Source of the DNA: Phyllobates terribilis
Taxonomy: Eukaryota
DNA length: 64,000 nucleotides
Direction of reading: 5' to 3'
Assembly (NCBI RefSeq): GCF_046119375.1
Contig: NW_027362762.1
Coordinates: 475,292,001-475,356,000 of the forward strand
A program made the translations under genes and the position numbers. Shown piece after piece: positions 2,669-64,000 of this stretch. The notes under the pieces were generated by a model. It made no database searches and had not been told where the DNA came from. It saw only the letters and a list, made by a program, of their open reading frames with translations. Each line of letters begins with the position of its first letter. Position 1 is the stretch's first letter.

Positions 2669-4281
2669 ACAGATCACTAATGTTGGCAGTGGATCAGGTC
2701 CGGCAAATTGAATTGCATATAATCTAGAAAGCAGCATAAAATGGGGATAGAAAAGTTCTCTTAATGATAAGCTCTACCTAACTCGGCCCTGCCATTGATT
2801 GAAAGCACTAAGCCTACACTCTACATAGGAGGACAGTCACTTTGAGGTCTGCAGCTCTTGCATGAGCTGGGCATACAGAGCGGTGTATGGGCTCAATAAT
2901 TTTTGTGAGAGTGAATGTACACACCCATAGACATACTTATGAATCTATACTCTGAGCATGCAGATTCAGAGCGACGCTTTGATCGATCGGTGTGGGTCTC
3001 AGGACCACGACCCTCACTGATCAGTAACACTATGCAAGTGCCTTTAATATATAAAATCTTTTATGAAATGTCAGTTGCCTTTTAATAACTTATTGAGCCT
3101 AATAATATTTTTTTCCTTATTCAAAATGATTATATTTTTCCTATGGTCACACTTTACCTACAATGAGATCTGTACACAGTTGTGCCAAGTGTTTTATTTG
3201 GTAGCCAATGTATTTCTCACATAAATTTTAAATGTAAAATCCGTTTGAAGTATGATTGTATTAAAATATAAGAAAAAAATAAATGTACATGGATAGTGAT
3301 GTTGCTGTAATTCTGCCAGCAGGTGGCATTAACACATGCAAAATAACGTGAACGGCTTTTATTAAACTGACATCATTTTTTTCTAGTTTACTGATTTTCC
3401 ATTAGCAAAAAAATAAATAAAGAGATTTTAAGGTTATTCTTCCTGGGAAAAGTATGCAGAGTGGATTCTCTCCAGAAGGTGGCCCTTGAAAGACCGTTTT
3501 CTGCCTTCTGGAGAACTATTTTGCATGCATTGACCTCATTCCTGCTCCTGTTTGAAGATTATCAAGTGCGATATTTTCAGTCTAGCTTTTGATCCATTTT
3601 CTTAGTTAGATGTGCCTGGCGACATGTGGAAAGGAAGTCTGCTTGATTACTGCTGATGTAACATTATCTTTGGGCGATTGTTCTTGTGTGCCAACATAAA
3701 TCCCTGGAGACAGTTATTCTGCAGCCTTATTTCATTATGTATCCACACAGTGCAGAAGTACAATACCTATTAGTCCCTTAGACCCAGAATTTCCACTGCT
3801 GGTGCTCAGCAACAGAAGGACATAATCCAATGTGAAAAATGTACAGTGGCATTCACCAGCCAATTTTATCCTCCTTAGTCTATGAACAGCAGAAATGCAT
3901 TGTGCATTAGGGCTTCAGCACAGAAAGGGCATTTCTCAGAGCCTATGCTTCTTAGGTATGTGCACACGACATCTTTTTCAGGCGGTTATGCGCCATATCC
4001 CGCCTGAAAAAGTTGAAAATAAATGTCAAAAAGAATGAACATATCATTGTAATATAAAAACGACCTGCTGTTCATATGTTCAGTCTTTGGCGCTTAGTTT
4101 AACCTTTTCTAGTCTCCAAAGATACAAAGCGATTAAAAGAAGTGAGCAGTCCATTCTTCTGGCCGCATCTGCTTTGAAGCCAATCACTAGTTTATGCAAT
4201 ACATATTAAAAAAATGTTGCAAAAACTGACCAGACACCAAAAAAAGATGCTACAGAAGAAGAGATGCTAGCGTGTCCTTAA

Positions 4282-15431: not shown

Positions 15432-17418
15432 TTCATTTAGCCGTGAAATTGTGTGCGACTTTAACAGGGTATTATGTAACCCTCCAAGTATTGGCCACAT
15501 CAACAATTTATCAACAAGATACTCTGAATGTCTTCAAAACATGATGCACATTTGTCAAAGCTATATTAAATGCTTTCCCTGCAATATCTATATAACAATA
15601 AGCTTAGGTTTGACTTAAATGTTTAAACATTTTTTGCAGACTGCAATTTATCACCTGCCAAAACAAGGAAAAAAAATACCAGTATCAGGGATTTTAACCA
15701 CTAATACAGCTTTCTAAACAAACCGCTACAGCACCATTCTGTATGGCCTATTATCTTCATACAATTAGGAAAACTGCATGTCTGGGCTATCTGGTCAGGA
15801 ATACAATTCGCTGTACGGATCGGGACTCCTCTCCTCTGCAGTCAGCACATGGTCTCTTATGACTTGGATTATGGAGACATTGCCCAAGCTTCCCTAGAAA
15901 CCAGTCTGTTATAGATTAATATTCAGTTTAAGCCATTTGGTACAGTGCTGAGATAGGGTAAGAAGCCTTGGCAGTGTTATATGTTCCTGCTTTTTAAATC
16001 AGATTTTTGTAAAAATTTTATTTGGAGTAAAACTTATGAATAATGAAAAAAACTGTTCAACTAGTGACAAAACAACAGGGAAATATATTAAGGTTTCCCA
16101 ACATCCGCAGGTAATGTATTACTTAATTTAAGTTCTGTAGGAACCCAAAAAAATTAGGAATAATAAATACCAATTTGATTTGCCAATCTATTTTAATACA
16201 GTTATTAGAAATGATATTGTACAAATAAATACTGCATATATTTTCTAATTAAAAGACTAAGTAAAAACCTATCTGCTGGTGTAAGGGTATGTGCACATGA
16301 CAGCTTTTTCAGGAGGAGGATGCAAATTAACATATGAACTGCAGTGTCAAAACTACTTGCTGTGCACATGTTCAGTCTTCTTGAGCCTTTTAACAGCTTC
16401 AAAGTTGTGAAACAGTTAAAAGAAATGACCTGACCATAGTTTAGACAACTTCCGCTTGCAGGCCACTCACTAGTTTACATATAGCAAATATGAAAAAAAC
16501 CCACAAAACTACAACAAAAAAAAAAAAGGAAGCGGCGATGCCGCTGCCACAAGCGCTGCCCACAGGATGCCAAAGAAGACACTTCAGGAAAAATCCCACC
16601 GGTGTTTTCTTGAAGCACCTTTTGCGTCAACAACTCAACGAACACACCAGCGTCTAACAAAAACATAGTGTGCACATGTCCTAAGGGAGAAAGTCTTCAC
16701 TGGCCTCTGTACAAGACTACGCATCCATGGGCTACATGTATTAAAAATATTCCTTTAATGGCTCAATCAACATTTATGAGAATATATCAACCCAGCTCTC
16801 CAAGAACTAATGAAACCACTGGGACTTTTACATTTTTCCAGCCCACAAACCTGCCTACATGGAATATGTGCAAGTGACCAATATGTTTAAAAATAAAAAG
16901 ATCATTTAATAAAAGCCATAATCTGTAAGTGCATATGATGCAAATCATGCAATTCCTTTGGTTTTTCCCACTGCGATCATCTTAAATATTAGTACATAAG
17001 ACAATACATTTTATTTAGTAGTCTTGTATACAACTTCGGTTTTAATTAAAATAAACCAGGTTTAAAAACGAAAAAAAGTTCTTTTTAAAAACACTTTAAA
17101 GACAATAAGACCACATCTATGGATGATTGTGAAAATTCTAGATGTGGGAGACAGAAGGGTTTTCACATGCTCATGAGAATCTGTTCCCTTGCTCCTATAT
17201 ACATACACAATGTGCAAGAAACATTACATTTACCTGTTAATTATACAAAGTTACATGCTTAGCGCTCACTTACACAACCAGACTGTACAGACAATATGCT
17301 TGCACAATTTCCTACTTGCCCTGCACATATTTTATAAGTTAAAGTGGATTTTATAACATTGTACTCAGTACCTACACAATTAGAAGCAGTAGCCATGCAA
17401 GCCAGGATTGCAATATAT

Positions 17419-17594
17419 NNNNNNNNNNNNNNNNNNNNNNNNNNNNNNNNNNNNNNNNNNNNNNNNNNNNNNNNNNNNNNNNNNNNNNNNNNNNNNNNNN
17501 NNNNNNNNNNNNNNNNNNNNNNNNNNNNNNNNNNNNNNNNNNNNNNNNNNNNNNNNNNNNNNNNNNNNNNNNNNNNNNNNNNNNNNNNNNNNNN
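17419..17594. other. Assembly gap (176 N)
   Basis: Run of N. ORFs spanning it are artefacts. Confidence 1.
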
Positions 17595-17883
17595 TACTTC
17601 GTATTATATACAGTTGCAGTAAATGTGCCCTTCTTTTTACCCTGAGAGATCATGCATTTATTCCCTTTCCGAATGAATTGATAAAGCTTTTAAAAAAAAT
17701 AAGAGGGGAAAGGGCACAATCAAACAAGATGGCCGAGGTCCTTTTCTTTAGTACTAGGAAGCGCACATCATTTGGAAACCCAACGGGTATACACAGTGTC
17801 ATCTTCAGATTTTATGACAAAGTCCATTTTCTTCTAGAACTCAGACCTAAAATAAAGAAAAAAAAAAAAAAAAAAGTATTAAA

Positions 17884-17884
<1 letters not shown>

Positions 17885-17926
<42 letters not shown>
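17885..17926. repeat. (TA)21 microsatellite
   Basis: Directly visible. Confidence 0.95.
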
Positions 17927-17930
<4 letters not shown>

Positions 17931-18933
17931 TAGACTTTAAAAAGAATGGGCCTATGAAAACTACTAATGCTCCAGCATATATCTGTGTGGTCACCAGCCC
18001 AGTTTCCAGCTTAAAGCACCACTCCAGCATTTTTCTTTTTTTAATTATCCCCCCACGAGAGGTGTTACTAATGTCTCTTCCCTGCCTGTAGTAAAATATT
18101 CACCAGCAGCAACATCTGCTGTTCCTGGTGCTGCAGCCCGTCACTGGCCCTCGTGAACAATCCTTTGCCACTGTACATGTAAAATTTCCAAATAATAGTC
18201 ATCCGTAGAGGTCAGATTTTCAGAATTAGCCATTTCAGCTGAATTTTAGATTAGGTGTATAAAATTAGCAAGTTGCAGCAATGCAAGTTATTACACCTTT
18301 CATTGTCAATGTATTTTCAATTTAAAGGCTTGCCAGGGCTAGAATATAAGGCAGTCGCGTAGCTACCAAGGGGGCACCGGGTGGGGGGGACGGTCGTCCT
18401 TGGCCCCACGCTCAGAGGGCCCCATCCGGCGCTACGGTTCCCTAAACTATGTCACCCTATATCAGGGCATTAAGAGGAGTGATATTATTGCACCACACAG
18501 CAAGTGCAGTAATAGGGTGACATATGGCAGGAAGAGAGTTGAGAATTGATAGGGACGGGGCTGAAATGTGAGAAGTCAAATGTGTCTTTGTTGTAATCTC
18601 TGCAGAGGAGTCGTGGCTAGAGAAGTTGTCATGTCTGTCTGGGCCAGATGGAAGAGACAGAAAAAGTGAAAAACGCCATCAGAAAGAACGTCAGCTGTAA
18701 GTCATCATCTATAACTGTGCTGTAATCACTTGTATGGTCTGCAGGACTGTATCTACCACTATATGTCACTGTATGGTGGTGTTATCAGTTCTGGTCTTGG
18801 TATAGAGATGTATTTTCAGACTGGTGATCTGACTGATGAGGTTCCCCTACATCCACAATTAGGGTGCAGCACCGTAGTTGTAAACAGGGCCCACTTAGAA
18901 GTTTCACCCCACTTGAGCTGAACCCCTAACTTC

Positions 18934-27283: not shown

Positions 27284-27634
27284 CTGGTTTGAAATAAAAA
27301 GATTCATTGATAGAATGAAAGGAAAGGGTATAAGAAGAAAATTGGTTAAAATATTTATGAAACACAGACTGGGTACATAAGCCCTACCAGACGTAAGGTG
27401 ATGGTGAATAATATTTTATACGTTAAAAGAAATCACGGAATATGAGGAAATCGCTGCATTCCATAGGTTCAAGCATACACTGTACACATTCTACAAACTG
27501 GAGATTGCAAAGCACTAAAAACATCTTGTTCATCTCAAAAAGTCAGAACAGTGCAGCTAAAGCAGTATGCAAATGCAGTAGCAAAAACATAAGACAAATC
27601 CTTCTAAAACATAAAACAAAAATTGAATACCTAC

Positions 27635-30568
27635 ATCAAAACTAGAACGAGTCCAAGAGGCTTGTCCTGATGTTACCGATCTGCTTGAAGTGTTTCGCCT
27701 TGTTAGAATTTCTGTTGCACTTAAACTGCTTTGGCTTCTTTTAGAGATATATTCCGGTACAGCGCTCGAACTGTTTACAGTCGAAACTCTATTTCTTGAG
27801 TAGAACTCACTAGTATGTGACCTTGAAGGATTGTCGTCATCAAAACATGATTTTCGTCTAGTCTTGGGATCCAGGTCATCTTTTTCATTACCAAGTCTGT
27901 CCAGTTCCTCTGTGGAACCAAAACCTCCTTTTCTCCAGGAGCTTTTACTTGTTACATATTTACTTTCAAAATTATTTGTTCCTCTTATATTATGACTTTT
28001 CCATGAGACCGTACTTGGATCCAGATTCTTGCTCACTTCCCGACGATTCCAAGCCATATCCTTATCTGCCACCTTTAAGATCATGTCATCTTTGATTAAA
28101 GAGATTTCAAGTGGAATATTGATGTTGTTTTTTAGCGGCTGATCATTTGCAGACAATCTAATATTACTTGTGGAAGTATGTCTTTCTCTAGTGATCTCAT
28201 CTGTGTTTGTGCGAGAAGAAATGGATTCAGATGGATAAATTTTTATACTACTCACTTTGTTAGATGTTCTGCTTACATCGGAGCTTGACCTTGCTGTGTA
28301 GTCACTCATAATTTCTTTCACATCTCTTTCAATTATAATAGGCTTAATAACTACAGTTGATTGTAATGATTCTCGTGGACTGCATGATCTTGGTGGAGTG
28401 TGAGAATTTATCTCTGTATTATCGGAGCTTTCAGAAGATATTTTCCTAGAACGTCCTGTCTCCTTTGGACTGGAATAGCTGTGATTTTCAAAAGAGGAAT
28501 GCCTAGCACTATCCAGGTTTAAGACTTTCTCTCTAGAACTTGACTGTCTCTTTGTATGCAGTCCTGAAAGCCTAGTCCTTTTCTCAGGATCTCTGTGGTC
28601 TGACATTTCTAAAATAATAGGCTTTTCAGGAATTTGTGGTTTTGAGGCCCTAGTTCTTGTTTTATCCCTACCATAGGAAGATCTGTGTGTACTTGAGGTC
28701 TGACTTATTTGTGGACTGGTTTCTTCATGACTTGAAGCTGTTGATTTAGGGTTTTGTTCAACATTAGTGACACTATCTTCCCGGACAAAAATGCCTCCAT
28801 ATCGCGACAGTCTATCCTGAGAGGAGGACTTTTTCTCTACATCTCCCGAGTTCATCTGGAATTTTGATTCAAATACAATATCTGTGCTTGTTGGAGCATC
28901 ACTAACTTTTGGACTAAGGTTATTCAATTCTGAGTGCAGTGCTGAGGTTAACAAGCTGTTCTCTTTTGGAATAGTTTTTTCAGTGTCAACTATAGTCTTT
29001 GAAATGTCACCAGAGGTCCCCTTTTCAATATCTTCATTTTCCAAAGAAATCTCCTTATTTGGCGAAAGTTTAATGGAATAATCTTCACCAAAAAACTTCA
29101 TAGATCTGTCTGTCTGTTTTGATGTAGACCCTTTCCAGGACTTTTGTGGAGCTTGTTCTTTAACAGCGGGTGGATATCGACTTAAAACAGATGGCTGGTC
29201 TTTAAGTTTCTTAGCATCGTTATGCACAATGCCAAAATCTTTACTACTTGAAAAATAGGAGAGCACAACCTTCTCCTCTTTCTTTAGATTTCCAGTTATA
29301 TCAATAAGATTGGACCTTGAAGTTTTTCTACTGCTTGAACTAGAGTTTGAAAGTTGTCTCTTAAATTCTGAATTTCTATATCTTTCAGTTTTAAGTGGCT
29401 GAGGTGATAAATCTTGTGCACTATATTTTGAAATAGACTCAGTAGATGCAACTTTACTTTTTGCTCTATCACTTTTATATCTACTTCGTGAGAGGTCTTC
29501 AGTTTCAAGAATCCCATTTTCAATTTCTTTATACTGACTGGTTTGTCTTTGTAACGTTTGTAATTCTTCAGTAACCAGTTTGTTTTTATTCTGTTCACTT
29601 ATATAGCTTTCTTGTAATTCACGGTGTTTCTCTTTTAACTGTTTTAATTCTTGCTCAAGCCCCTCATAGTGTTTTAGCCTATTCTTAAGTTTTTCAATTT
29701 CTTGGTTAAGTTCTTTTATTTTGTTATCTTCTTGGTAGTTGTTTTTCTCATTTTCATTGTTGCTGCTTGTCTGAATTTCTGACTGCTTAATGTAATCAAA
29801 TCCAACTCTTTGCAATGAATTAGATGTTAGGCCATCTTCAATGTTGAATTTGTTATGCTCTACATGCTGATCAGTGGACCTCTCCAAAGCATTGGATTCA
29901 TTTCTACTTCGCTCCCCTGTGATTTTTCCCTTCATTTCCAATTCTTCTTTAAGTTCTAAAATTATTTTTTCACTATGCTTTTCTTTTTCTAGCAAAATTT
30001 TCTTTTCATTAGCAAAACTAAGGGTCAAAGACTTAATTTTCTCCAGCTCACTTGTTAAAAACTGTTCAGTTTTATCCAGTTTACTTTCAGATGATTCCAG
30101 TTCTTTAACTCTGGCTTTAAGTATTTCCAGTTCAGACGATAACTTTTTAGACATGTTTTTTTCTTCATTCAAACTAAGACTTAGCTGAGTGCAGTCACTT
30201 TTGCTCTTGTTGAAAGCCTCTTCTAGCTTCTCAAGCTCACCCATTCTTTTTTGGAGCTGCTCAATTTCCAGTCTAAGTTCTTGGGCAACATTTTCCGCAT
30301 TTTCCAGTTTCTCTTTTATTAGTCTACACAAATCCTCTGCTTTCTTCACTTCTTCATCTTTTCCCTCAATCTTGAGCACTCTTTTTCTCAAAGCTTCTGC
30401 TTCTACTAACAAGCTAGAATTACTCCCCTCTGCCTGTATAATTTTATCCTGAAGGTCAAGGACTTCATCTTCAGCTTTTTGTAGATTTCTTGTTGCTTCT
30501 TCCAAATCATCTAAACGTCGACCAAGACTTTGTAGTTTAAAACGTAAATGACGACTTGAATGCTCCAT
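27635..30568 (-). CDS. LUZP1: Leucine zipper protein 1, main coding exon (978 codons)
   Basis: N-terminus MEHSSRHLRFKLQSLGRRLDDLEEATRNLQKAEDEVLDLQDKIIQAEGSNSS...KRVLKIEGKDEE closely matches human LUZP1. A coiled coil is followed by a Ser-rich tail. ATG at 30568 (the ORF track starts at an upstream GTG). Donor GAT|GTAGGT at 27635/27634, so the residues after ...RSSFD in the ORF track are intron read-through. Likely acceptor TTTTGTATTGTAG at 30709/30708. Confidence 0.95.
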
Positions 30569-31800
30569 TTTTTTATTCTCCACAAAAAATAAATTGTGAC
30601 TTTAGTCCTTAAAAGTTCAATTGTTTAGTTAAGACTTTACTAGTTTCAGAATTATCCTTTTTCTTCTTGAGGAGCACACTTTATAAGACATCCAGAGACC
30701 ATCTTAACCTACAATACAAAAGTTTAGGTTACTTAGATTTAAAATCATGTGTATATATCATAATAGCTTGTTAAAATGTGGTAACCAGATAACCATCTAA
30801 ACATATTCCATGTTTTAAACTAAGTAAAGTAAAAGTATGTCAAGTAAAATTATAGTGTGGGAGTTTGTCATAGTGGGAGATACTCTCAGCAGCAGAGAGA
30901 AAGGGGGTACCAAGTTCCTCTACAACATTTCCATGTGCCAATAGGTTATATGAAAAGAGTTTTCCTACTTGGGAACTTACACATGCCTAATCAACAAGGA
31001 TGTTATACAAAACAAACAAATATTCACTCAACATGCCCAAACCAATATGCTTTGCATTGCAAGAAATCTAATGAAAAGGATAAAAATGGAAATGCATATA
31101 AGGTGTGATTGTATTAACACTAGAACTACTGATGGAGTCATTTTGACTCCTTTCGTTTTTTTATTTCTCTTCTGTGACTACATTTTTCAGAATTCCGGCT
31201 TGAAACTCGGTGACTTTTCCTCAAATATGATGTGAAAAAAGATTTTGTGAGAATAAATAATTTTGGTGAAAAATTTGCGCGTTTTTTTCAAAATTTACCA
31301 AGAACTACTGAAGAGAGTCATTTTGACTCCCTACTATATTTTGAGGTCCTTTTGTCACTAAATGTTGCTATAAAGTTTTGTGCATAATTTTTTCACTCTG
31401 TCTTATTTACCCTGATGTTCATATAGATGTAGTTCAATTTACATGTCAACTTTTCACATTTTCCTTGTGTTTTACTTGCTTGTATTACTGTGTAATGCTG
31501 AACAAAATAGCTTGTTTACTCTAGGCTCTTATCTTATGCTAATGAAGGGTGGTGTTTTTCTAAGGTCCTAGCAGGAGACAGTATTCTGGATAGTAACTTT
31601 ACTTTCAGTTCAGCTGAAGAGACAAAGAACAGACGCAGACATACGAGCTCTGAAGACTCATACAGGTATGAATTGTTATGAAATAGTTTAGCTGTCTGTC
31701 AACTGATTCAGCCCACCTGCTTTTGAAGGTGGCAGAACAGTTATTATTTCTTTTAGTTTTCATTTCATTTCTATTTTTCAGCAGGGAACTATATAGAATT

Positions 31801-31996
31801 ATGGAATTTGTGAGGAATATGGAGAGAAGACGTTTGATAAAGCCTCAGGATATTCTGGCTACTTTGCAATCCATACCGGAGGATGAATCGGAATCCGAAT
31901 TGCAGGAACATGTATTTGATTCTGACAGTGATGAAGATTTCATTCCTCAGAACATATCAAGTGAATCTGAAGACTCAGAAGGAACAAATCCAGAAG
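31801..31996 (+). CDS. piggyBac transposase coding exon 1 (acidic N-terminus)
   Basis: MEFVRNMERRRLIKPQDILATLQSIPEDESESELQEHVFDSDSDEDFIPQNISSESEDSEGTNPE followed by the donor AAG|GTAAGT (phase 1). Preceded by the acceptor TTTTTCAGCAG at 31784. Confidence 0.75.
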
Positions 31997-32041
31997 GTAA
32001 GTAGTTATGTGTATTTATTTGTTCTTCCACACACTGAGTTA

Positions 32042-32355
32042 GAGCCTGTGCACACTAGCAGAATTCTGGCTGAATAGCCATCTGGATATTCTTGCCGCAA
32101 TACAGGCCGTACCTGCCTGCTCATGCCTGAAGCTCCGCTCCGAACCCCGGGCTGGAGCCGCTGTCAGGGACAGAGCAGCGCTTGCTTACGCGCGAGCACG
32201 GCTCCGTCCCAGACAGCGGCTCCAGCCCGGGGTTCGGAGCGGAGCTTCAGGTATGAAACTCCGCTCTGTACCTGAGCGGGCAGGTACGGGCCGGATTGTG
32301 GTGAGAATATCCGGTCGGATATTCCGCCGCTAATCCAGCCAGTGTGCACGGACCC
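32042..32355. mobile_element. Harbinger-type MITE inside the piggyBac intron
   Basis: TTA-GAGCCTGTGCACACT...AGTGTGCACGGACCC-TTA with palindromic interior. 3-bp TTA TSD. Confidence 0.8.
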
Positions 32356-32397
32356 TTACAAAACAAAAATTCTAAATATTCATCAACTTTTTTACAG

Positions 32398-34046
32398 ATA
32401 TTCCAAGCACATCAACTGGGGATCGGGCTCATGCAGTTATGTTGCCTCGTGACCATCCTCCTGGTCGTGGACAGAAAAAATCAGCAAAACGTCCCAGAAA
32501 TGAAAGAACAACAGATAACGATAGCGGCGAAGGTAATGCAACAACAAACACCAGAGAAGGCGAATCTGAAGGAATACTAGTTTCAGCGGATGGTATTCAA
32601 TGGAAACCTGTTGAAATTGGAGAACACTTGCCTGGTAGGCGTGACAGCCAAAATATTCTTCGAGAAGCACCTGGCCCTACAGGATACGCCAGAAGAAATA
32701 TCATTATCGATAGTCCTTTGAGCGCATGGCGTTTATTTTTTGATTCATATATATTGACCCATATAAAGAACTGTACGCTTGCAGAAGCATGCAGGAACAA
32801 TAATTTACAGTTTACTCTATCTGATGAGGAACTAGATGCATTCATTGCGATATTCTATGCTCGTGGAATATCTGGCACGAACCGTCACTCGATTAGCAGT
32901 ATTTGGTGTAATGACTGGGGAATACCGTTTTGCAAAGCGACAATGTCTAGGGACCGCTTTGTTGAAATTATGAGGTTTCTCAGATTTGATGAGAAATCTA
33001 CTCGATCGGAGAGACTGCAAACGGACAAGTTTGCTCTATTTTCTACTGTGTGGGACAGGTTTATTGAAAATTTTATTGCGTGTTACAAACCTGGCCCATA
33101 CATAATGGTGGATGAGCAACTTTTCCCAAGCAAAACTAGGTGTCCATTCACGCAGTACATGCCTTCCAAACCAAATAAATATGGCCACAAATATTGGCTA
33201 GCTGTTGATAAGAGGAGCAAATATCTGGCAAATGGCTTCACTTATCTAGGCAAAGATGACACACGCCGTGCTGAGGACCGTTTAGCTGACCATGTGGTAA
33301 TGAAGTTATTGGACCCGTTTTTGAAAAAAGGTCGCAATGTTACAACCGATAATTATTTTACTTCAGTAAAATTAGCTAAACAGCTAAAAAGCAAAGGAAC
33401 AACCATCGTGGGAACACTGAACAAGATAAGGCGAGAAGTGCCTAAAGAAATAAAATCCATGAAAGAGGAATTGTACAACACTAAAGTGTTTAGAAATGAA
33501 GACAATTTTACACTTACAGTATATCAAGGAAAGCCCAACAAAAATGTTGTCATTTTGAGTTCCGTCCATCCAGATGTTGTTGTTGCGTCTGATTCCGCTA
33601 AAAAAACTCCAGAAACGGTAAAGTTTTACAATGAAACAAAATATGGAGTAGATGTAGTGGATCAGATGGCACGAAAATATACCACACGAACATGCACAAG
33701 GAGATGGCCTGTTCATGCATTTGAAAATGCCTTAGACTTTGCGGGTATAAATGCATGGATAATATTCAAGGAGATTACCCACCAAAAAATGTCACGCAAG
33801 GCATTTTTGCAAACGCTTGTGAGAGAGTTGAGTGGTCCTTATGTCACAGATAGGGAAAAGGGTTCCACGTCCCAAGTTTCTACATGCTCAGAAGTGATGG
33901 TTTAAACAAAATTTTGCCAGATCAAAGAAAAGTGCAAGAAAAATAGATCTGTCGGAAATTGTAAGACTTGTGGTAAGTCTTTGTGTGGGCAATGTACTGC
34001 CATAAATCAAAGGCAATGCCTAAAATGCAAAACACCAAATGTTTAG
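32398..34046 (+). CDS. piggyBac transposase exon 2 (DDD core; Cys-rich domain cut off by in-frame TAA at 33903-33905)
   Basis: Acceptor CAACTTTTTTACAG at 32397 splices in frame into the 488-aa ORF. Catalytic motifs VDEQL, TDNYFTS and GVDVVDQ are present. After the TAA the same frame continues TKFCQIKEKCKKNRSVGNCKTCGKSLCGQCTAINQRQCLKCKTPNV*. Confidence 0.85.
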
Positions 34047-37000
34047 AAGGTGAATTCTGCGCCATATTTTCATTTTTATGCTCCTCCACCTACATTTTCT
34101 CTGCTTTTTGTTCTTCAGTTGTTGTTTATATGTGTGCACTTGAATAAAAAAAAATGTTTGAAAAACGTCTATTATAATTATTGTTATTTTCTGTAGAAAA
34201 ATAAGAAAAGCAGAAAAAAAACAATCAAAAGCATTACTGTTGGATCTCACAATAATAATACATTACAAAAAATATAATTATTAATAAATAACCACAAATG
34301 AAACTCTAAAAATAAACGAAAACAAGCAAGGAGTCAAAATGACTCCTTTCAGTAGTTCTAGGCGGGGTCACGAGTCCAGTAGTCCTAGTGTTAAGTATAG
34401 ATTATACATACACATGCCTGCAAATGAACATTTTATCATGTAATCAAAGTTCTTAGTTCTCAACCAAACACAGCAGATGACTGCATGACCTGAATCAGCA
34501 ATTATATGACACAGTAAACCCATCTGTTTAAGCTGGTGCTGAGGATACAAAAAAAATTAATAAAAAATGAAAACTAACTCAAGCTTACAATTTTGGAAAG
34601 GCATTAACACAATAATATCCGATTAGTTTTTCTGCTAGGCCTTGCTTTGAGAAATATTTTTTTCTGGATTGTCTCAAAAACAGAATACCAATAAAGTACA
34701 TGAAAGTGCCAAAAATAAAAACATTGAAAAAAGGAGAAAAAAAAAAAAACTACAGACTTATAAAAACACCAAATCTAGCAAAAAAACATGTTACCATTTT
34801 AATAGCAATAAATTGTATTGTAATGGCAGTCAGAGTTGTGAAGTCCACCATACACGGTAAGCTCCTACAGAAACATAATTTTTCTATTCAAGGAAGACTT
34901 TCACCATGATTCTACAGGCTACTGGGTCAATTTAAAAGGGCTGCTCTCAGGTTTAATATTTGGGAAAGCACCTCTCCCCTGTTGGGCGACATTGTCCTGA
35001 CAAGTCACAGACTGGAATAGCAGTAAAGTTGCGCCGCTGGTCTAAACTGTGCACTCGCTGATTCAGCAGCATTCGAGGTGAACATAGACACTAAACCGGC
35101 CAGATCCTACATTCCAGTTAGCTTTAGGTCCATACTTACAGCACACTATTGAAAAGAGCCTGTAAGAACTGCACGTGTTCGGCCACAATGCTAGACTACA
35201 GTGATGGTCGGTAAGCTAGACAACGAGAGTAAACAAAATTAAAGAAAACCTCCATTCTTGAGAACGGAGGAGATTTTTTTTTTTCTTATAAGATTAGAAC
35301 TGCAAAGTTACTTGTTTTTAAAAGCACTTTGCAATTTTTACAATTATTGATGTTGACACAACCCCTTTAAGTTTTCCTGTATTTGTAAAGAGTTGGTAAA
35401 AACAAGAACCTTGGAAACAAAGACCTAAACATTGGGAGAATGCCTTCATATCCACACTCAATTTCCCAAGGCTTGAGCTGCAACATGAGAAAAGTTACTA
35501 AATGCTCACTAGATTGTATTGGTGCTCAACAATGTAACACTCTATATTGCCCTCTGTGTATGATAGATGCTGGCATTGTGGAAGAAAGAGGGGTACTATG
35601 TTGCACATATGTTGGGATTGAGAATACCTTTTTGCCATTTTTCTTTCTACTTTTCAGACCATTATAGCAGGGAAAGGATACATGGCTCACCTTAAATTGT
35701 TTTATCATCAATTTATCCTAGCCCTATAGGGGGGACACAAAAGAGGAGCCGCCTCATAAGCTTTATCCGCAGCACGATCTATCATTCCAAAATATTGGAA
35801 ATCCTCTGAGCCCCAACCCTGTTGGAATAGTATGGAGAGATGTCCAGTCTTCATAGGTAGCACTCTGTTAGCTGTATATGGAGATGGCTGCTCCTAGTAA
35901 GCACCTGTACACACCAGTCTTCTGTTTTGGATGTGACAGTCAGTTTTTTTCGTATATATGCATAGGCCTTCTGACGGAGCACTCCGCCTCTAAGCCACAG
36001 GCAGTTTTAATTACAGCAGGTTCTTACCTTCCCATTCACATGCAGACTTTAGACTCTAAGAGATTAGGTGTCGCTGACACCAAGCCCTTTGTTTAGTGAT
36101 GAAGAGGTGTCAACCAGACACCATCATTACTAAACCTGTAAGTAAAGAGTTAAATAAACACACACACAAAGAATAAAACACTATTTGAAATACAACAGGC
36201 TTTTAAATCATTTAAAATTAACCAATATACTCACCTCAGGTCCGACGGTGATCCAAGGGTTAAAGTGATGTTCCAGGTTTCTTTTTTCAAATATCTTTAT
36301 TTAGCTCCAAAAAGCATTCATTGCTGTACAAAAAAAGCATCAAAAACGCATGCAAAAACGCACCAAATCGCGGTAAAAACGTGCGTTTTTGCTGCCAAGA
36401 GGTGCAGAAACCTTGCATAAATTTCTGCAATCAAATACTGAACGTGCGCACATAGCCTTACACTGGCTGATTATTGGAAACAGGCGTTCCTAGGAAACAG
36501 GGTGCCAATCACCCAACAGCTCACCCTGGCTGATGGTGGTTGTTAAACGTCCACCCATAAGCAATACAGAAGCTGATCAGCTGTCCTTTAATTGTCTGTT
36601 TAGACAGGCCGACCTCACTTCCATGCACACAGCACGATTGTCCTGTGCTCAACAGACTGTCCTTCTTGGTAGCACATCGTGTTTACATAGAATGATGTGC
36701 TGCAGGGAACAATCAGAGTGTAGGGTTGCAGGATCATCCGGTCTCAATAAGCAATGTCCAGACCTCAGATGCAACAGGAAGAAAAACTCGCTTTTACTGG
36801 AGCAGTTGATTACAGCTCTCCACAGTTATTCAGTACACTGAGCCAACAGCCACTCGGTGTGATGACCCCAGCTCTTTTCCTGCAATGTGTAGCAGATCTC
36901 CTCACTCCTGCTACATATAGCACTATAAGTGCGCTAAAATGTCTCCCCTGAACCTGGGCCTTTATATCCATGACACCTCAGCCTTACAGGAAAGTACCTC

Positions 37001-53796: not shown

Positions 53797-56640
53797 TTAA
53801 ATACCAGAGGGAGGGATCACCGCTTGCAACACCCTTCTACCAAAGGACAGATCAGTAGAAGAGGAAAGGTCAAGACGGTAATGTTTGTAAAATGTAGCAG
53901 GGGATGACCAAGTTGCCGCCTTACATATAATGTCGATGGGCACATCCGCCTTCTCAGCCCAGGAAGCAGCTACCGCTCTGGTGGAATGGGCCTTCAGGTT
54001 CTCAGGAACCGGCAGATTGCTAGAAGAGTAGGCTAAGGTAATAGTATCCCTGACCCATCTAGCTATGGTCCCCCTTGTAACCTTAAGTCCTTTCCTAGCC
54101 CCCTGAAAGGATATAAATAAAGCGTCACTCTTTCTCCAGGCTTTTGTCACTTCCAAATACTGGACTAACACCCTCCTAACATCTAAGGTGTGAAGCTTAT
54201 ATTCCTCAGAATCCCTAGGATTAGGATAGAAGGAAGGGAGAGTGATTACTTGAGTCCTATGGAACTTGGAGGCTACCTTTGGAAGATAGGCCGGGTCTGG
54301 TCTTAAGATTACTCTATCCATACATACTTGAGTGAATGGATGGTTAATGGATAGTGCGTGTAAGTCACTGACTCTACGAGCTGATGTCAGGGCCACCAAT
54401 AGCGCAGTCTTTAAAGTTAAGATTTTTTCTGAAACCTTCTCTAAGGGCTCGAAGGGAGGTTTGGTTAATGCTTCCAGAACTAAATTAAGGTCCCAAGGAG
54501 GCATTCTTGGAACAGGAATAGGTCTGGATCTATGACAGGCTTTAATAAATCTAATGATCCATCTATTTGCTGCCAAGTCATAATTATACAGTGCCCCCAG
54601 AGCAGATACCTGTACCTTAAGAGTACTGGTGGCTAGTCCCATGTTTAACCCCTTCTGGAGGAATTCTAGTATGGCCTCAATAGGAACCCTCCCTTTGGCA
54701 GACTGACCCGAGGTAGACAAGAACTTAGCCCAGGTTCTACCATAGATTCTAGTTGTTATGGGCTTTCTACTTGCTAGAAGGGTAGTAACAAGATCTGGAG
54801 AAAACCCCCTTTGCGTCAATAGCGACCTCTCAAAATCCAAGCCGTCAAATGCAGGCCCGCTCTTTGGGGATGACAGACTGGGCCCTGCCTGAGGAGATCC
54901 GGGATGTCCGGAAGAACCCATGGATCTGCTTGGGACATTCTCTTCATCCAAGTGAACCATGGTCTCTTGGGCCAGAACGGGGCGATCAATATAACCCTCG
55001 CCCGTTCCTCTCGGATCTTCCTCAGGATAGTAGGGATCAGTACTAAAGTGGGAAAGGCATAAGCTAGAGTGAAATCCCACTGAATCTGCAGCGCGTCCAC
55101 CGCAAACGCCCCCTCTTTTGGATTCAGGGAGCAAAAGGTTTCGGTCTTCCGATTGTGTCTGTTTGCAAATAGATCTATCTGGGGCTGTCCCCACCGATCC
55201 ACAATCTGCTGAAAAACGGCTGGATTCAACTCCCACTCTCCTTGTTTCAAGATGTGACGACTCAAGAAATCGGCCTTTATGTTCTCTTCCCCTTTTATAT
55301 GCAGTGCCGAGAGCGTAACCAGCCGACTCTCGGCAAAACTGAAGATCTGATCCGCTATTAACATCAGAGGGAGAGACCTGGTACCCCCCTGATGGTTGAT
55401 GTAGGCGACTGTTGATCTGTTGTCTGACATTATCCTGACGTGAGGACCCTAAAGAACAGAACTGAATTCTTTTAGCGCGTTTCTGGCTGCCAACAGCTCT
55501 TTCATGTTGGAAGAGAGGCTTGTCTCGCTGTCCGACCAGAGGCCTTGTACAGAACGATCCCTTAGGTGAGCTCCCCAACCTTCCGCACTTGCGTCTGTTG
55601 TAATTGTATCCGACACCTGGAAGGTCCAAGGAACCCCCAAAGATAGGTTGACCGGAGATGTCCACCAGTCCAGGGAGTTGATCACAACATCTGGAAGAGA
55701 TATTTTCCCATTCAGGCGACCTTTGAGCCGCCTGTCCGCTGCCAGAATCTCCTGTTGAAGACACCTGGAATGGTGCTGGGCCCACTGAACCGCCGGAATG
55801 CAAGACGTCATTGTACCCAACAGAGACATTGCACTCCTCAGGGTGATGGTCGGATTGCTGACAATCTGAGATGTTAGGGATCTGATCTTCAGTTTCTTTT
55901 CCTCTGGCAGAAGACAGGTTTGGTTTTCCGAGTCCAGAATGAGACCCAGGAAAGACTGAACCCTCTTTGGTTCCAGCCTTGACTTCTCCAGATTTAACAG
56001 CCAACCTAGGCGTCTTAGACTGGCCATGACGTCCGCCAGGGCTAGAGCACAGAGTTGACTTGATCTGCCCACTACTAAGAAGTCGTCCAGATAAGGGATG
56101 ACTAAAATATCTCTTTCCCTCAAGTGCGCTGTGACCTCCAGAATGATTTTTGTGAAGACTCTCGGCGCCATGGAAATGCCAAAGGGAAGAGCTGCGAACT
56201 GAAAATGCCTTACGTGCCTGCCGAATTGTACAGCTACTCTTAGAAACTGTTGATGATCTGGCAAAATCGGGACGTGGTAGTAGGCGTCCTTCAGATCGAG
56301 GACGCACATAAAACAGTCCGGAAATAACATCTTTATGGCTGATTTTATTGTTTCCATCTTGAAAGGCCTGTAGATTAAATGGTCGTTCAGTCTTTTTAAG
56401 TTCGCAATGGTCCTGAAGGAGCCGTCCGGCTTCTTTATTAGGAAGAGGGTCGAATAGAATCCTCTTCCTTGCTCGGGTACAGGTGTTTCCACCAGAACTC
56501 CTTTCCTGAGCAGAAAGAGAACTTCCTGCTGTAAGGCTATCTGTTCCACTAAACCTCTGGGGGCTGATATTTTGACAGTGTTCTTGGGCCTGCTCTTGAA
56601 CTCTAGTGTGAGCCCCCTCCTGATTATCCCTAAGATCCAA
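53797..56640 (-). CDS. DIRS tyrosine recombinase frame (true start uncertain; ORF-track start is TTG)
   Basis: C-terminal YR domain with TSARRVSDL (R), AHSTRA (HxxR), ATWSS and YKHYR (Y). The frame is open across the RT region. Confidence 0.9.
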   Translation of the reverse strand: MDLRDNQEGAHTRVQEQAQEHCQNISPQRFSGTDSLTAGSSLSAQERSSGGNTCTRARKRILFDPLPNKEAGRLLQDHCELKKTERPFNLQAFQDGNNKISHKDVISGLFYVRPRSEGRLLPRPDFARSSTVSKSSCTIRQARKAFSVRSSSLWHFHGAESLHKNHSGGHSALEGKRYFSHPLSGRLLSSGQIKSTLCSSPGGRHGQSKTPRLAVKSGEVKAGTKEGSVFPGSHSGLGKPNLSSARGKETEDQIPNISDCQQSDHHPEECNVSVGYNDVLHSGGSVGPAPFQVSSTGDSGSGQAAQRSPEWENISSRCCDQLPGLVDISGQPIFGGSLDLPGVGYNYNRRKCGRLGSSPKGSFCTRPLVGQRDKPLFQHERAVGSQKRAKRIQFCSLGSSRQDNVRQQINSRLHQPSGGYQVSPSDVNSGSDLQFCRESAGYALGTAYKRGREHKGRFLESSHLETRRVGVESSRFSADCGSVGTAPDRSICKQTQSEDRNLLLPESKRGGVCGGRAADSVGFHSSLCLSHFSTDPYYPEEDPRGTGEGYIDRPVLAQETMVHLDEENVPSRSMGSSGHPGSPQAGPSLSSPKSGPAFDGLDFERSLLTQRGFSPDLVTTLLASRKPITTRIYGRTWAKFLSTSGQSAKGRVPIEAILEFLQKGLNMGLATSTLKVQVSALGALYNYDLAANRWIIRFIKACHRSRPIPVPRMPPWDLNLVLEALTKPPFEPLEKVSEKILTLKTALLVALTSARRVSDLHALSINHPFTQVCMDRVILRPDPAYLPKVASKFHRTQVITLPSFYPNPRDSEEYKLHTLDVRRVLVQYLEVTKAWRKSDALFISFQGARKGLKVTRGTIARWVRDTITLAYSSSNLPVPENLKAHSTRAVAASWAEKADVPIDIICKAATWSSPATFYKHYRLDLSSSTDLSFGRRVLQAVIPPSGI

Positions 56641-56879
56641 GAATTGGATGAAATTTTCTTCCAGGCCGGCAGGAAGTGGGACAATCTTCCTCCCACCTGG
56701 GGGGAACTGTCACTTAGGGGCTTTCTTATTCTCGGAGGAGGGACCCCCAAACATGAAGCCTCTGCTATACGGCTTTCGGTCTTTCCAGCTACCTTGGTCT
56801 CTGGGAGCTTTACTGCGGCTGTATTTTCTCTTCCGAAAGGAACTGTTAAATCGGGAACCAGACACCGTGGGAAATCCAT
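54816..56879 (-). pseudogene. DIRS pol: RT - RNase H - adenine methyltransferase-like, with one in-frame TAG at 55449-55451
   Basis: LDLKDAYYHVPI, LPFGISMAPRVFTK, PYLDD, TTDASAEGWGA, SDNRSTVAYINHQGG, IDLFAN, AYAFPT, ILIAPFWPKRPWF. ORFs 55449-56879 and 54816-55430 share a frame (...SVL*GPHVRIMSDN). Confidence 0.9.
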
Positions 56880-58305
56880 GTTTTTTGTCTGCGGCTTTAT
56901 CTAGGATGTCATCTAGACCTTTGCCGAACAAGAAGTCCCCTTCACAAGGGATTGAGCACAGTTTAGACTTTGACTGCACATCTCCTGGCCAGCTCTTGAG
57001 CCATAGCGCCCTACGGGCTGCATTAGAGAGGTTTGCAGACCGGGCAGCCAGCCTAACTGAATCTGCCGATGCATCTGCCAGGAATGCAGCCGCTCCCTGC
57101 ACAAGAGGAAGGTCTGATAGAATTTTCTCCCTAGACACATTCCCCCTGATCTGGTCTTCCAATTGTTGAAGCCAGATCATCATAGATCTAGCAGTGCAGG
57201 TCGCTGCTACTGCCGGTTTAAGGGCCCCTGCTGACGACTCCCAGGTTTGCTTAAGGAAGGACTCCGCTTTTTTATCCAGCGGGTCTTTTAAGGCTCCTAA
57301 ATCCTCAAAGGGCAGAGTGGATTTTTTTGAAGATTTTGAAATGGCCACGTCAATCTTAGGGGTTTTGTCCCATTTAGCCGCATCCTCATCCTCAAAGGGG
57401 TACCTCCGCTTGGAGGATGACGGCAGCTGACCCTTCCTATCCGGTTTCTTCCATTCCCTTTCTATCAGAGATTTAATCCTGTCATTGACCGGGAATGAGC
57501 GTCTCCTCCTTTGGTCTAAGCCCCCGAACATAACATCCTGGACTGTTCTGGGCACTTTGGTATCGGTAATACCCATAGTCCCTCTGACGGCTTTAACTAG
57601 TCTCTCAGTATTATCAACCGAAAAACAAGGTCTGCCCCCCCCATTATCATCCGAAGACTCCGATGACGATGAGGAGTGATTAGAGGAGGAAGGCAGTTCT
57701 CTCGTAAAACGGGACTCCACTGATTCCTCTGATTCTGAAGAAACTAGTTTTCGCTTCTTCTTTTTGAGTGAGGTTAAGCCTCTTAAAGACTCTCTGACCT
57801 CTGTCTGGATTAGATCCTTTAATTCTAAAGAAAACCTGGGGGACTCCTCTGCAATGGTTTTCTGAATACAGTCTGAGCATAGGTTTTTGGCATAGGAGGT
57901 GGGAAGACCGATTTTGCATAAAGCACACTCCCTGTTTTTATTTTTAGCACTACACTTCTTCGCCTCCGGAGGCGGTGGTTGCCGTTCACATGAGGGCTCC
58001 CATCTGGCGGAGGTGGACTGACGAAGTCTTTTCTGACCAGTCTTGCCGGAACTCGTACGCCCCTCACTGCTATGACTTTGTCGATGGGAAGATTCCCGTT
58101 CCATTTGTTTGAGCTGCTTGCGCTGCTTTGATGGCTGTGGCTGCTGCTGTACTTCCTGTGGCGGTGACAGCTGCTGCCCAGGTGACTGCGGTTCCTCATT
58201 CATCATGGCGGGGATGCAGACACCGCCATCCTGATTGCTCCCCATCCTTAAAAGCAGTAGGGCTCCACCTCCTTTAGGCTCCTCCCCTTCCGGCAGCGTG
58301 CTCAT
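56710..58305 (-). CDS. DIRS gag-like ORF1 (531 aa)
   Basis: Zinc-finger-like CALC...CSDC. LAP2alpha-like region (EWKKPD...RYPF...WDKTPKIDVAI...LKDPLDKKAE). Overlaps the pol start. Confidence 0.85.
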   Translation of the reverse strand: MSTLPEGEEPKGGGALLLLRMGSNQDGGVCIPAMMNEEPQSPGQQLSPPQEVQQQPQPSKQRKQLKQMERESSHRQSHSSEGRTSSGKTGQKRLRQSTSARWEPSCERQPPPPEAKKCSAKNKNRECALCKIGLPTSYAKNLCSDCIQKTIAEESPRFSLELKDLIQTEVRESLRGLTSLKKKKRKLVSSESEESVESRFTRELPSSSNHSSSSSESSDDNGGGRPCFSVDNTERLVKAVRGTMGITDTKVPRTVQDVMFGGLDQRRRRSFPVNDRIKSLIEREWKKPDRKGQLPSSSKRRYPFEDEDAAKWDKTPKIDVAISKSSKKSTLPFEDLGALKDPLDKKAESFLKQTWESSAGALKPAVAATCTARSMMIWLQQLEDQIRGNVSREKILSDLPLVQGAAAFLADASADSVRLAARSANLSNAARRALWLKSWPGDVQSKSKLCSIPCEGDFLFGKGLDDILDKAADKKHGFPTVSGSRFNSSFRKRKYSRSKAPRDQGSWKDRKPYSRGFMFGGPSSENKKAPK

Positions 58306-60278: not shown

Positions 60279-63200
60279 CCACTTCGCGCCAGAGCCTGTT
60301 TTTGCCTTCGTGACCGGGCCAATTTTTTCAATTCTGACCACTGCCAGTTTATGAAGTAATTACCCTGGAACGCTTCAACGTATTCCCCTGATTCTGAGAT
60401 TGTTTTTTCGTGACATATTGTACTTCATGATAGTGGTAAAATTTCTTCGATATCACTTGCGTTTATTTGTGAAAAAATCGGAAATTTGGCGAAAATTTTG
60501 AAAATTTTGCAATTTTCAAACTTTGAATTTTCATGCCCTTAAATCAGAGAGTTATGTCACACAAAATAGTTAATAAATAACATTTCCCACATGTCTACTT
60601 TACATCAGCACAATTTTGGAACCCAAATTTTTTTTTGTTAGGGAGCTATAAGGGTTAAAAGTTGACCAGCGATTTCTCATTTTTCCAACAAAATTTACAA
60701 AACCATTTTTTTAGGGGCCACATCACATTTGAAGTCACTTTGAGGGGTCTTTATGACAGAAAATACCCAAAAGTGACACCATTCTAAAAACTGCACCCCT
60801 CAAGGTGCTCAAAACCACATTCAAGAACTTTATTAACCCTTCAGGTGATTCACAGGAATTTTTGGAATGTGGAAGAAAAAAATTAACATTTAACTTTTTT
60901 CACAAAAATGTTACTTTAGACCCAATTTTTTTATTTTCACAGGGGTAACATGAAAAAATGGACCCCAAATTTTTTTGTGCAATTTCTCTTGAGCGTGCTG
61001 ATACCCCATATGTGAGGGAAAACCACTGTTTGGGCTCACTGCATGGCTCGGAAGGGAAGGAGCGCCATTAGACTTTTTGAATGTAAAATTTGTCTGAATA
61101 ATTAGCGGACGCCATGTTGCGTTTGGAGAGCTCCTGATGTGACTAAACAGTGGAAACCCCCCACAAGTGACACCATTTTGGAAACTAGACCCCTTAGGGA
61201 ACGTATCTAGATGTGTGGTGAGCACCTTGAACCCCAAGGTGCTTCACAGAAGTTTATAATATTGAGCTGTAAAAATAAAATTTTCACATTTTTCCCACAA
61301 AACCGTTTTTCATCCCTTAATTTTGCATTATCATAAGGGTAACAGGAAAAATTGCACCATGAAATTTGTTGTGCAATTTCTCCTGAACACGCTGATACCC
61401 CATATGTGGAGGCAAATTACTGTTTGGGCACATGGCAGGGTTTGAAAGGGAAGGAGCGCCATTTGACTTTTTGAATGTAAAATTTGTTTGAATAATTAGC
61501 GGACGCCGTGTCACATTTGGGGAGCCCCTAATGTGCCTAAACAGTGGAAACCCCCCACAAGTGCCACCATTTTGGAAACTATACCCCTTAGGGAACTTAT
61601 CTAGATGTGTGGTGAGCACCTTGCACCCCCAGCTGCTTCACAGAAGTTTATAATATTGAGCCGTAAAAATAAAATTTTCACATTTTTCCCATAAAAAATG
61701 TTTTTCATTCCCTAATTTTGCATTATCATAAGGGTAACAGGATAAATTGCACCATGAAATTTGTTGTACAATTTCTCCTGAGTACGCCGATACCCCATAT
61801 GTGGGGAAAACCACTGCTTTGGTGTACGGCAGGGTTCGGAAGAGAAAGAAGCGCTATGTTGGCTGGGATAGGCAGCAGACACCATGTCACATTTGAAGAG
61901 TCGCTGACATGCCAAAACAGCAGAAACCCCCACAAGTGACCCCATTTTGTAAACTACACCTCTCAAGGAATTCATCTAGGGAAGTAGTGAGCATTTTTTA
62001 ATTTTTAAATTTATACCATTGGGCAGTGAAAAAAGCATAATTATATTTTTACCACAAAAAAATGTTTTACCCTCAGATTTTACATTTTCACACAGGGCAA
62101 TGGGTAAAAATGGTGCCGAAAGGTGTCACACAATTTCTTCTAAAAGTGTCAATACCCCATATGTGGCTGTATCGTACCACTTAGCCATACGGTGAGATTT
62201 GAGGGGGAAGGAGCGCTATTTGACAATTGGAGAACAAATTATTGTAGAATAGGCATTTGGATTTGGGAGCACAAAATTTTCTGAATTTCTTTTGGGGGGC
62301 AAGGACCATTTTGCTTTTCCAGAGCCTTTCTGCTACCAGTAACTTGGAAGTCCCTTATATTTTTAACAGATGATGGACCTGAGTGGGGACTAGCTTTTTT
62401 TGAGGACTGAGTTGAAGCTTTTATTGGGAACATTTTACGTAACATTTATCCGGCGCTCTAGGCTGAGCACTTACATCGGGGTTTCCATCTAATTTTCCAA
62501 GTGATTTAATTCAGATGAAACCCCTGCAGGATCCATTCACTGTAATGAGGCAGCAGAGTTACTCTGGACTCCGTCTGGCCTCTGTTTAGTGGTGTCCTTT
62601 TTTTCAGAAGTGCACAAAACTGTGGCCAACCGCACTTTTATGCACGCCTAAAACAAATGACACCGTGGGATCCCAGGCTAGACGGCATCCACAGTGGCCT
62701 ATATCTGCCTCATTACAGGGAATCTTCCATCATGGGTTCTGGCTGAATCACGTATTTCAGAGATTTACACGGAAACTCTGGTGTAAGTGCTCAGCGCAGA
62801 GCACAGGATAAATGTGAGCAGAGCCTTACTGGGATCTTTGGGAGACATAATAAACAAATCAGTAGCAGGTGAATAATATTTGTTTTATTTATTTCTTATG
62901 TCGTTCCTAGTGTGATATAACTGATTAGATTACTTTATTCTTCGGGTCGGTGCGATTACAGAGATACCAGATTTATATTGGGTTTTTATGACTGACAGCT
63001 GTCACACACTAAAATACGCTTTTTTTGCAAAATCTAGTTTTTGCATCACCATATTTTGAGAGCTATAATTTTTCCATATTTCGGCCGATAGAGTCATGTG
63101 ATGGCTTGTTTTTTGCGGGACGAGTTGAAATTTTTATTGGAACCATTTTTGGGCACGTGACATTTTTTGATCGCTTTCTATTCCGTTTTTTGGGAGGTAA

Positions 63201-64000
63201 AGTTAACAAAAACAAACACTTCAGGAATTGTTTTTTGAGTTTTTTTTTATGCCGTTCTGCGTGTGGTAAAAGTGATCAGGCAGCGTTATTCTTCGGGTCA
63301 GTACGTTTACAGCGATACTACACTTACTGTATTTTTTTCATGTTTTGGCGCTTTTACACAATAAAACAATTTTATAGAAAAAAAAATTTTTTTTTTGCAT
63401 TGCTTTATTCTGAGCGCTATAACTTTTTTATTTTTTGGCTGATGGAGCTGTATGGCAGCTTTTTTTTGCGGAACAAGATGACGTTTTCAGTGGTACCATT
63501 TTTATTTCTATTCTGCTTTTTGATCGCATTTTTTTCCACTTTTTGTTTGGCGATATGATCAAAAAGCATATTTTTTTGCTTCGTTTTTTATTTATTTTTA
63601 TTACGGTGTGCACAGAAGGAGTTAATTAGTGTGACAGTTTTATAGCTCGGGTTGTTTCGGACGCGGCGATACCAAATATGTGTACTTTTTTTGGTTTTGT
63701 AATAATTTACGGATTTATTGGTTTAATATTTTATTTATTTATTTTTATTTATTTTGTGATTTTTTTTTTTTTAATAGTTTAAAAACTTTTTTTTTACATT
63801 TTTACTTAGTCCCTGTATGGGACATTAATTTTTATTTTTCTGATCACTGATCTCATGTAATACACATATATTACATTATATGAGATCTTCACTGACTGTT
63901 TCAGTCAGAGTCTCCTGTCTGACTTCAGCTACATACAGGCTGAAGTCAGACAGGAAGGACACCATATATGGCAGAGCTGGAGGCGGTCATGTGACCTCCA
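60279..64000 (-). mobile_element. Large TTAA-flanked element, copy D, reverse orientation, runs off the window
   Basis: Begins CCACTTCGCGCCAGAGCCTG, the reverse complement of the copy B terminus. It is reverse-colinear with copy A, including the 23000-24300 block. Confidence 0.85.

Follow-up and report, generated by a model that had tools for sequence, protein, structure and literature searches.

The 64,000-nt stretch of Phyllobates terribilis DNA analyzed here (the window) hosts at positions 31114-34394 a complete piggyBac element, flanked on both sides by TTAA target-site duplications (TSDs; 31114-31117 and 34391-34394, + strand). The element ends in 14-bp terminal inverted repeats (TIRs), CACTAGAACTACTG at 31118-31131 on the + strand and, at 34377-34390, CACTAGGACTACTG read on the - strand, which match the 5' end at 13 of 14 positions, with one mismatch, and are 94% complementary when the TSD is counted in. 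The pattern formed by TTAA plus TIR occurs twice in the window, against 0.05 occurrences expected by chance. The palindromic subterminal repeat GGAGTCATTTTGACTCC is found on the + strand in the interval 31134-31334 (copies at 31134 and 31314), and a third copy is inverted at 34330, the repeat being thus located near both ends of the element. The copy in the window is very probably a young full-length member of a high-copy dendrobatid piggyBac family, the transposase gene of which is made up of three exons and hosts a miniature inverted-repeat transposable element (MITE) in its coding intron.

The open frame at 32397-33902 covers the Pfam domain DDE_Tnp_1_7 (PF13843) over its entire length (residues 1-349 of 349, E 1.7e-67). 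The transposase of the element also matches the structure of the T. ni piggyBac transposase (6x67, E 1.3e-66), residues D268, D346 and D447 of which align to the aspartates within the motifs VDEQ, TTDNYF and GVDVVDQ, respectively. TTAA duplications, short TIRs accompanied by subterminal repeats, and a DDE_Tnp_1_7 domain with the aspartate triad are all present in the window copy, which is a piggyBac element. The Cys-rich C-terminal domain is in frame with the transposase in the family, and is cut off in the window copy. The single uninterrupted open reading frame (ORF) typical of IFP2 is not found, the 65 N-terminal codons residing on an exon of their own, the catalytic domain on one exon.

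Transcription and splicing were monitored over positions 30900-34600 in four public runs. X21 and X24 are raw reads of poly(A) RNA from one organism, denoted B; X17 and X9 come from a second organism, denoted A, and consist of contigs from a presumed RNA run and of DNA contigs, respectively. Gene models were compared by using the 28 dendrobatid models returned by a protein search. The frame across exons was established by arithmetic, exons were searched separately, and the spliced protein was represented by the public models P0005 and P0007.

Exon 1 (31565-31665, on the + strand, as are all parts of the gene) is non-coding and lacks an ATG. It is covered by an X17 contig spanning 31563-31662 at a depth of 1093; its donor CAG|GTATGA is confirmed, its 5' edge provisional. 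Intron 1 (31666-31781) is a GT..AG intron of 116 nt, and its acceptor, 31781|31782, lies in a tandem CAGCAG. The joint 31665^31782 was found in one X21 read and in the X17 contig of depth 1093 (aligned as 31662 to 31779, and shiftable by +3), and neither in X24 nor in the DNA run X9. The first-pass annotation had placed this non-coding exon at 31609-31665 and its junction at 31665-31785. The donor is the one predicted and the intron is spliced, in RNA only; the 5' edge must be moved, the RNA contig extending back to about 31563/5, the TTTCAG acceptor assumed at 31609 has no RNA support, and the acceptor of the junction lies 3 nt upstream, at 31781|31782. Two ATG triplets reside in intron 1, at 31668 and 31678, and none in exon 1 or in the 19-nt leader of exon 2; splicing therefore clears the leader.

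Exon 2 (31782-31996) consists of the 19-nt leader, which is open in frame, of the ATG at 31801, and of 65 codons plus 1 nt encoding an acidic N-terminus. Its coding part (31801-31996, 196 nt) ends in AAG|GTAAGT. Intron 2 (31997-32397; 401 nt, phase 1, GTAAGT...TTTTTTACAG) terminates at the acceptor TTTTTTACAG|AT, 32397|32398, and the codon it splits, G+AT, specifies Asp. The coding part of exon 3 up to a premature stop (32398-33902) encodes a linker and the full DDE_Tnp_1_7 domain with the three aspartates, and includes most of the 488-aa ORF (32439-33905) which had been described at first pass as devoid of an N-terminus, an observation confirmed here. RNA skipping the 401 nt of intron 2 was detected in three X21 reads, in 10 X24 reads with six different starts, and in an X17 contig of depth 791, and the joint 31996^32398 is missing in the DNA run X9. 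In X17 unspliced RNA across the intron reaches a depth of 17 only, vs. 791 for the spliced contig. The acidic exon joined in phase 1 to the acceptor at 32397|32398, inferred earlier from the letters alone, is thus found in two poly(A) runs and in the X17 contig, exactly at the junction proposed for an RNA check, and the length of about 567 aa to the first stop is also correct (196 + 1505 nt, 567 codons). In all junction reads, as in most other reads, the first mate maps to the - strand, which in usual stranded libraries denotes sense RNA.

Behind the premature stop, and in frame with it, lies the region coding for the Cys-rich C-terminal domain (33906-34046; codons at 33906-34043, followed by TAG at 34044-46). 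An AATAAA polyadenylation signal is located at 34143-34148, and RNA depth falls near 34124-34170. Neither the acidic exon nor the 46-aa Cys-rich piece, searched alone, hits a named Pfam family, weak B-box matches being the only ones obtained. In the family, exon 1 is spliced to exon 2 (31665^31782), which provides the ATG and a conserved acidic N-terminus, and exon 2 is joined in phase 1 (31996^32398) to a large exon encoding the linker, the entire DDE/RNase-H catalytic domain, and a Cys-rich DNA-binding tail. The resulting family protein is 614 aa long.

The sequence generated by the second joint, TNPE-D-IPST, is present in all 28 dendrobatid gene models. The 65-aa peptide of exon 2 can be aligned to the N-terminal ends of less closely related proteins, according to the pattern M.RRR..(D/E)IL..L..IP(E/D)D.SE. 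In relatives P0026, P0027, P0028 and P0036, all in short metagenome contigs, N-terminus and core form one ORF. The coding intron, which interrupts the variable acidic/linker region ahead of the catalytic domain, looks therefore derived in the frog lineage, as far as single-ORF protein calls made by non-splicing callers can tell. RNA joints, gene models, homology of the N-terminus, and sense poly(A) RNA in two frog species all agree with the view, put forward at first pass, of a piggyBac lineage which bears introns, retains intact ends and TSD, and is still expressed.

A few observations weigh against this picture of a three-exon family. The raw RNA reads stem from organism B, which is not the species best covering the window, and organism A is represented by contigs of the presumed RNA run only. 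The MITE, as described below, is assigned to the family by the continuity and depth of contigs from a single DNA run, rather than by individual genomic copies. A start of transcription was not found in the runs over 30900-34600. RNA also covers the interval 31114-31564, reads entering the left end (31114) from varied flanks; given this coverage and the loose flank ends, some of the RNA is read-through that begins outside the element. Foreign sequence is present in two contigs, joined at 31563/5 and 31782/3. In one of them, from X17, foreign sequence ending in ...ATGATCTCTGCAGGAAGGGGGAGA (MISAGRGR) is joined to 31782/3, and this is the start of model P0002. In the other, foreign sequence is joined directly after the AG at 31563-64, with a loose end before 31563; the last 24 nt of this foreign part do not occur in the window, and the AG at 31563-64 seems to be used as acceptor by a foreign upstream exon.

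These data bear on the possibility, which is tentative at best, that the family has no working promoter of its own. RNA would mainly derive from sense copies inserted in transcription units of the host, or of other transposable elements, the acceptors 31564|5 and 31781|2 capturing upstream exons, and splicing would be a side effect of gene trapping rather than a programme of transposase expression. In line with this, the frame from acceptor to ATG is open (RELYRI-MEF), 10 of the 28 models feature a foreign N-terminal part joined in frame at ...RELYRIMEF, the loose end of the X17 contig before 31783 matches the MISAGRGR start of P0002, the second contig carries before 31563 sequence not found in the window, and reads run through 31114. 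Against it, 15 of the 28 models start at the ATG of the element, the element's internal joint of exon 1 to exon 2 outnumbers all other forms in X17 (depth 1093), and several sequence variants are transcribed, hence many loci contribute. The lack of a promoter would be compatible with the three-exon anatomy, from which it differs on the source of transcription only. In the three-exon reading favored here, transcripts would start at an internal promoter.

The splice acceptors of the element appear to trap foreign upstream exons, the fusions being gene predictions save one, P0002, which is matched by an RNA contig. A consensus donor GGTAAGT located at 33972, inside the Cys-rich coding region, is used by three public models to exit the element.

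The MITE hosted in intron 2 (32042-32355, 314 bp) is a near-palindrome, flanked by TTA TSDs at 32039-41 and 32356-58, and ends in 18-bp TIRs (GAGCCTGTGCACAC.../GGGTCCGTGCACAC...). It is of the PIF/Harbinger type by its TSD, featuring a 3-bp TWA duplication, terminal inverted repeats and no coding capacity, and has a GC content of 62%, vs. 37% for the piggyBac element. The length of the intron is accounted for by 84 nt of intron sequence, the 314 bp of the MITE and 3 bp of TSD (84+314+3 = 401). This anatomy is as first described; the native intron of 84 bp is putative, and a MITE-less form was not seen. No second copy of the MITE is present in the window. In the DNA run X9 depth over the MITE is 1381-3536, vs. 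about 800 elsewhere in the element, and the excess indicates that other copies of the MITE reside in the genome.

The MITE had been regarded as an insertion that the window copy survived, a view which is now unlikely. In an X9 DNA contig (31833-32135) exon 2 continues through the intron into the MITE without any branch, the depth of 828 being similar to that over other parts of the element, a contig from X17 covers the whole of intron 2, MITE included, and a joint skipping the MITE (about 317 nt) was found in none of the four runs. The MITE is probably not private to the window copy, and looks part of the family consensus. The opposite view, that the MITE occurs in this copy only, or in a minority of copies, and is merely tolerated here, most family members having an 84-bp intron, is improbable in the light of the same contigs and of the missing skip; it can draw on the TSD and TIRs, which mark the MITE as a secondary insertion, and on the fraction of the words of the element held by the best public runs, 0.81, which would fit the absence of MITE words. 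As to the order of events, most likely the MITE inserted into the intron of a progenitor, and was then amplified together with the element. The RNA of the intron folds with an energy of -247.6 kcal/mol (z = -18), the MITE forming one long hairpin. In the pre-mRNA this hairpin would leave the splice sites about 84 nt apart, a plausible reason why splicing tolerates the MITE. The center of the hairpin (32120-32258) also matches many microRNA-precursor families of Rfam (MIR1861, mir-1451 and others), though with values far below gathering scores (51 bits vs. 88 for the best one, MIR1861), and these hits are probably of the generic hairpin type.

The window copy is close to the family consensus. 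Its private changes amount to about 0.4%, and consist of 12 substitutions, of which three are non-coding, two synonymous and seven non-synonymous, and of 2 small indels. One of the substitutions creates the premature TAA at 33903-33905. All other reads and contigs have CAA, encoding Gln, at this site: T is replaced by C at 33903 in 12/12 X21 and 30/30 X24 reads, and in X17 and X9 as well, and Gln is found in the nine public models that cover the codon (9/9). The TAA and the Cys-rich domain downstream share one reading frame, and this domain is in frame in P0005, P0007, P0011 and P0020. Contrary to what had been assumed, the protein of the window copy is not intact: with the private CAA>TAA change the Cys-rich domain is lost, leaving a 567-aa product without a tail vs. 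614 aa in the family, and six further private amino-acid changes are found. This is the pattern of neutral decay in a young insertion. In piggyBac transposases the Cys-rich tail binds the transposon ends. The 567-aa product, having lost it, should be unable to do so, and the window copy should be non-autonomous. Its intact ends could still serve in trans for the transposase encoded by other copies. At the locus itself the outcome is an ordinary one, a young copy that is dead.

The nearest public proteins, 98-99% identical, are P. terribilis models labelled as uncharacterized protein, followed by proteins of Ranitomeya variabilis and Dendrobates tinctorius. Models showing 98-99% identity are found on many chromosomes. 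The closest relatives outside dendrobatids, found in metagenome contigs, a mosquito, a spider and fishes, are only 50-68% identical. A search for loci related to P0026, a 61%-identical protein, returned only members of the same piggyBac clade in JGI metagenomes (L001-L010), which are decayed, have broken ORFs, are 45-85% identical to P0026, and reside in contigs of at most 29 kb. They are presumably eukaryotic DNA inside metagenome samples, and give no firm indication on introns. Internal-deletion derivatives of the family were also observed (33397-33635, 32927-33804 and 31505-32814). The form 33397->33635 skips 237 nt, does not have GT..AG ends, and is transcribed (18 reads in X24); the 1308-nt deletion form (31505-32814) was found in X9 DNA contigs.

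Given this abundance, it is hardly conceivable that the spliced RNA comes from a domesticated, single-copy host gene derived from piggyBac, with the window copy as a dead transposon relative: several domesticated PGBD genes exist in vertebrates, and introns are found in PGBD5 (PMC3902484), but near-identical models are scattered over many chromosomes, DNA word depth is in the hundreds, RNA reads include several segregating variants and the 33397->33635 deletion form, which implies that many loci are transcribed, and the window copy, one of many, with its intact TIRs and TSD and its 7 non-synonymous vs. 2 synonymous private changes, does not fit a single-copy syntenic gene without ends and under purifying selection.

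The family varies little among the organisms monitored. Once private changes are removed, the consensus sequences of organisms A and B show about five differences (33213, 33214, 33770, 33776 and 33956) in the approximately 2.9 kb covered, and 70-81% of the 31-mers of the element are present under five species labels. The R>E change at 33213-14 is common to organism B and to the Ranitomeya model P0016, and suggests that organism B is a Ranitomeya-like species. If A and B belong to different genera, the divergence would be far below the neutral expectation, and horizontal transfer would be a candidate explanation.

The surroundings of the element include, on the - strand at about 530 bp from it, an ORF of 1008 aa (27557-30583). 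No Pfam match was found for it, and a protein language-model search led to LUZP1 clusters (0.98). The ORF is probably a large coding exon of the host LUZP1 gene, in which case the piggyBac element would lie, antisense, in the preceding intron. Further away, a DIRS-like retroelement resides on the - strand at 53797-58305, the ORFs of which match a reverse transcriptase (E 9e-16), a LAP2alpha domain (E 1.5e-20) and, below the Pfam cut-off, a tyrosine recombinase/phage integrase (E 5e-5). Two additional ORFs on the + strand, at 17408-18091 (227 aa) and 63025-63558 (177 aa), have no Pfam match.

Most mobile piggyBac elements have no introns in the transposase domain (PMC3902484), and the notion that they carry a single uninterrupted ORF, stated in the first-pass annotation, is correct as a rule. 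Pokey, a mobile piggyBac of Daphnia, is an exception, featuring a GT-AG intron of 68-84 bp confirmed by reverse transcription PCR (PMC3849761, PMC3575242). Intron-bearing mobile piggyBacs are therefore already a known kind, and spliced piggyBacs are rare rather than new. Pokey of D. pulex and D. pulicaria resembles the frog family in being mobile, in having TIRs, and in the short canonical GT-AG intron spliced from the transposase gene. According to the literature, Pokey has a single intron, which is located in the 3' portion of the gene and is followed by a second exon of 585 bp, whereas the frog family has one intron in the 5' untranslated region and another, of phase 1 and with a nested MITE, which interrupts the acidic N-terminus ahead of the catalytic domain. 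Because their positions differ, the introns were probably gained independently. The dendrobatid family is set apart from Pokey by intron number, intron position and the co-amplified MITE.

Other known elements share parts of this organization. With the T. ni piggyBac (IFP2; 6x67/6x68) the frog element has in common the TTAA target, short TIRs and subterminal repeats, a DDE_Tnp_1_7 core with the equivalents of D268/D346/D447, and an acidic region and a Cys-rich domain at the N- and C-terminus, respectively; the two proteins match only distantly (E 1.3e-66), the frog TIR starts with CAC, not CCC, and three exons replace the single uninterrupted ORF. The TxpB family of Xenopus (Uribo1/2, Kobuta) is also made up by frog piggyBacs, and Kobuta, with about 610 aa, is close in size to the 614 aa of the dendrobatid protein, yet it is described as a single ORF without introns (PMC5381638) and not as a three-exon gene. 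In primate PGBD3 the transposase ORF is closely preceded by a 3' splice site and followed by a poly(A) signal, and the element, residing in a host intron, gives rise to CSB-PGBD3, a fusion with an N-terminal host moiety (PMC3902484, PMC5381638). This layout recurs in the frog element, the acceptor-to-ATG frame of which is open, and fusions are found in 10 of 28 models. PGBD3 is a fixed, domesticated single insertion, whereas the frog fusions are predicted at many loci, one of them being matched by an RNA contig. No paper on a dendrobatid piggyBac family was found in the literature search.

The transposase encoded by the consensus of the family is complete (614 aa) and retains its catalytic residues, and transcripts of the family are found in at least two species of poison frogs. 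The family would thus be competent to transpose, and is a candidate for a recently active vertebrate piggyBac. It is the second independently documented mobile piggyBac whose transposase needs splicing and, by literature search, the first found in a vertebrate. Annotation pipelines seeking a single ORF would call such copies N-terminally truncated, and the public models of the frog family are labelled only as uncharacterized proteins, and are often chimeric. A bolder proposal, doubtful for the time being, is that the family is a natural gene trap presently in operation, equipped with 3' splice sites of its own, an open acceptor-to-ATG frame, the donor at 33972 and a poly(A) signal, and spread recently also by horizontal transfer. 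Were this true, sense insertions in introns would be spliced into transcripts of the host, or of other transposable elements, at many loci, generating fusions with or without the DNA-binding tail. Such fusions would be raw material for domestication events like those leading to CSB-PGBD3, PGBD1 and PGBD2, and could be observed while the transposon is young. The built-in acceptors make the family a useful natural system for studies on the fusion of transposase and host genes.

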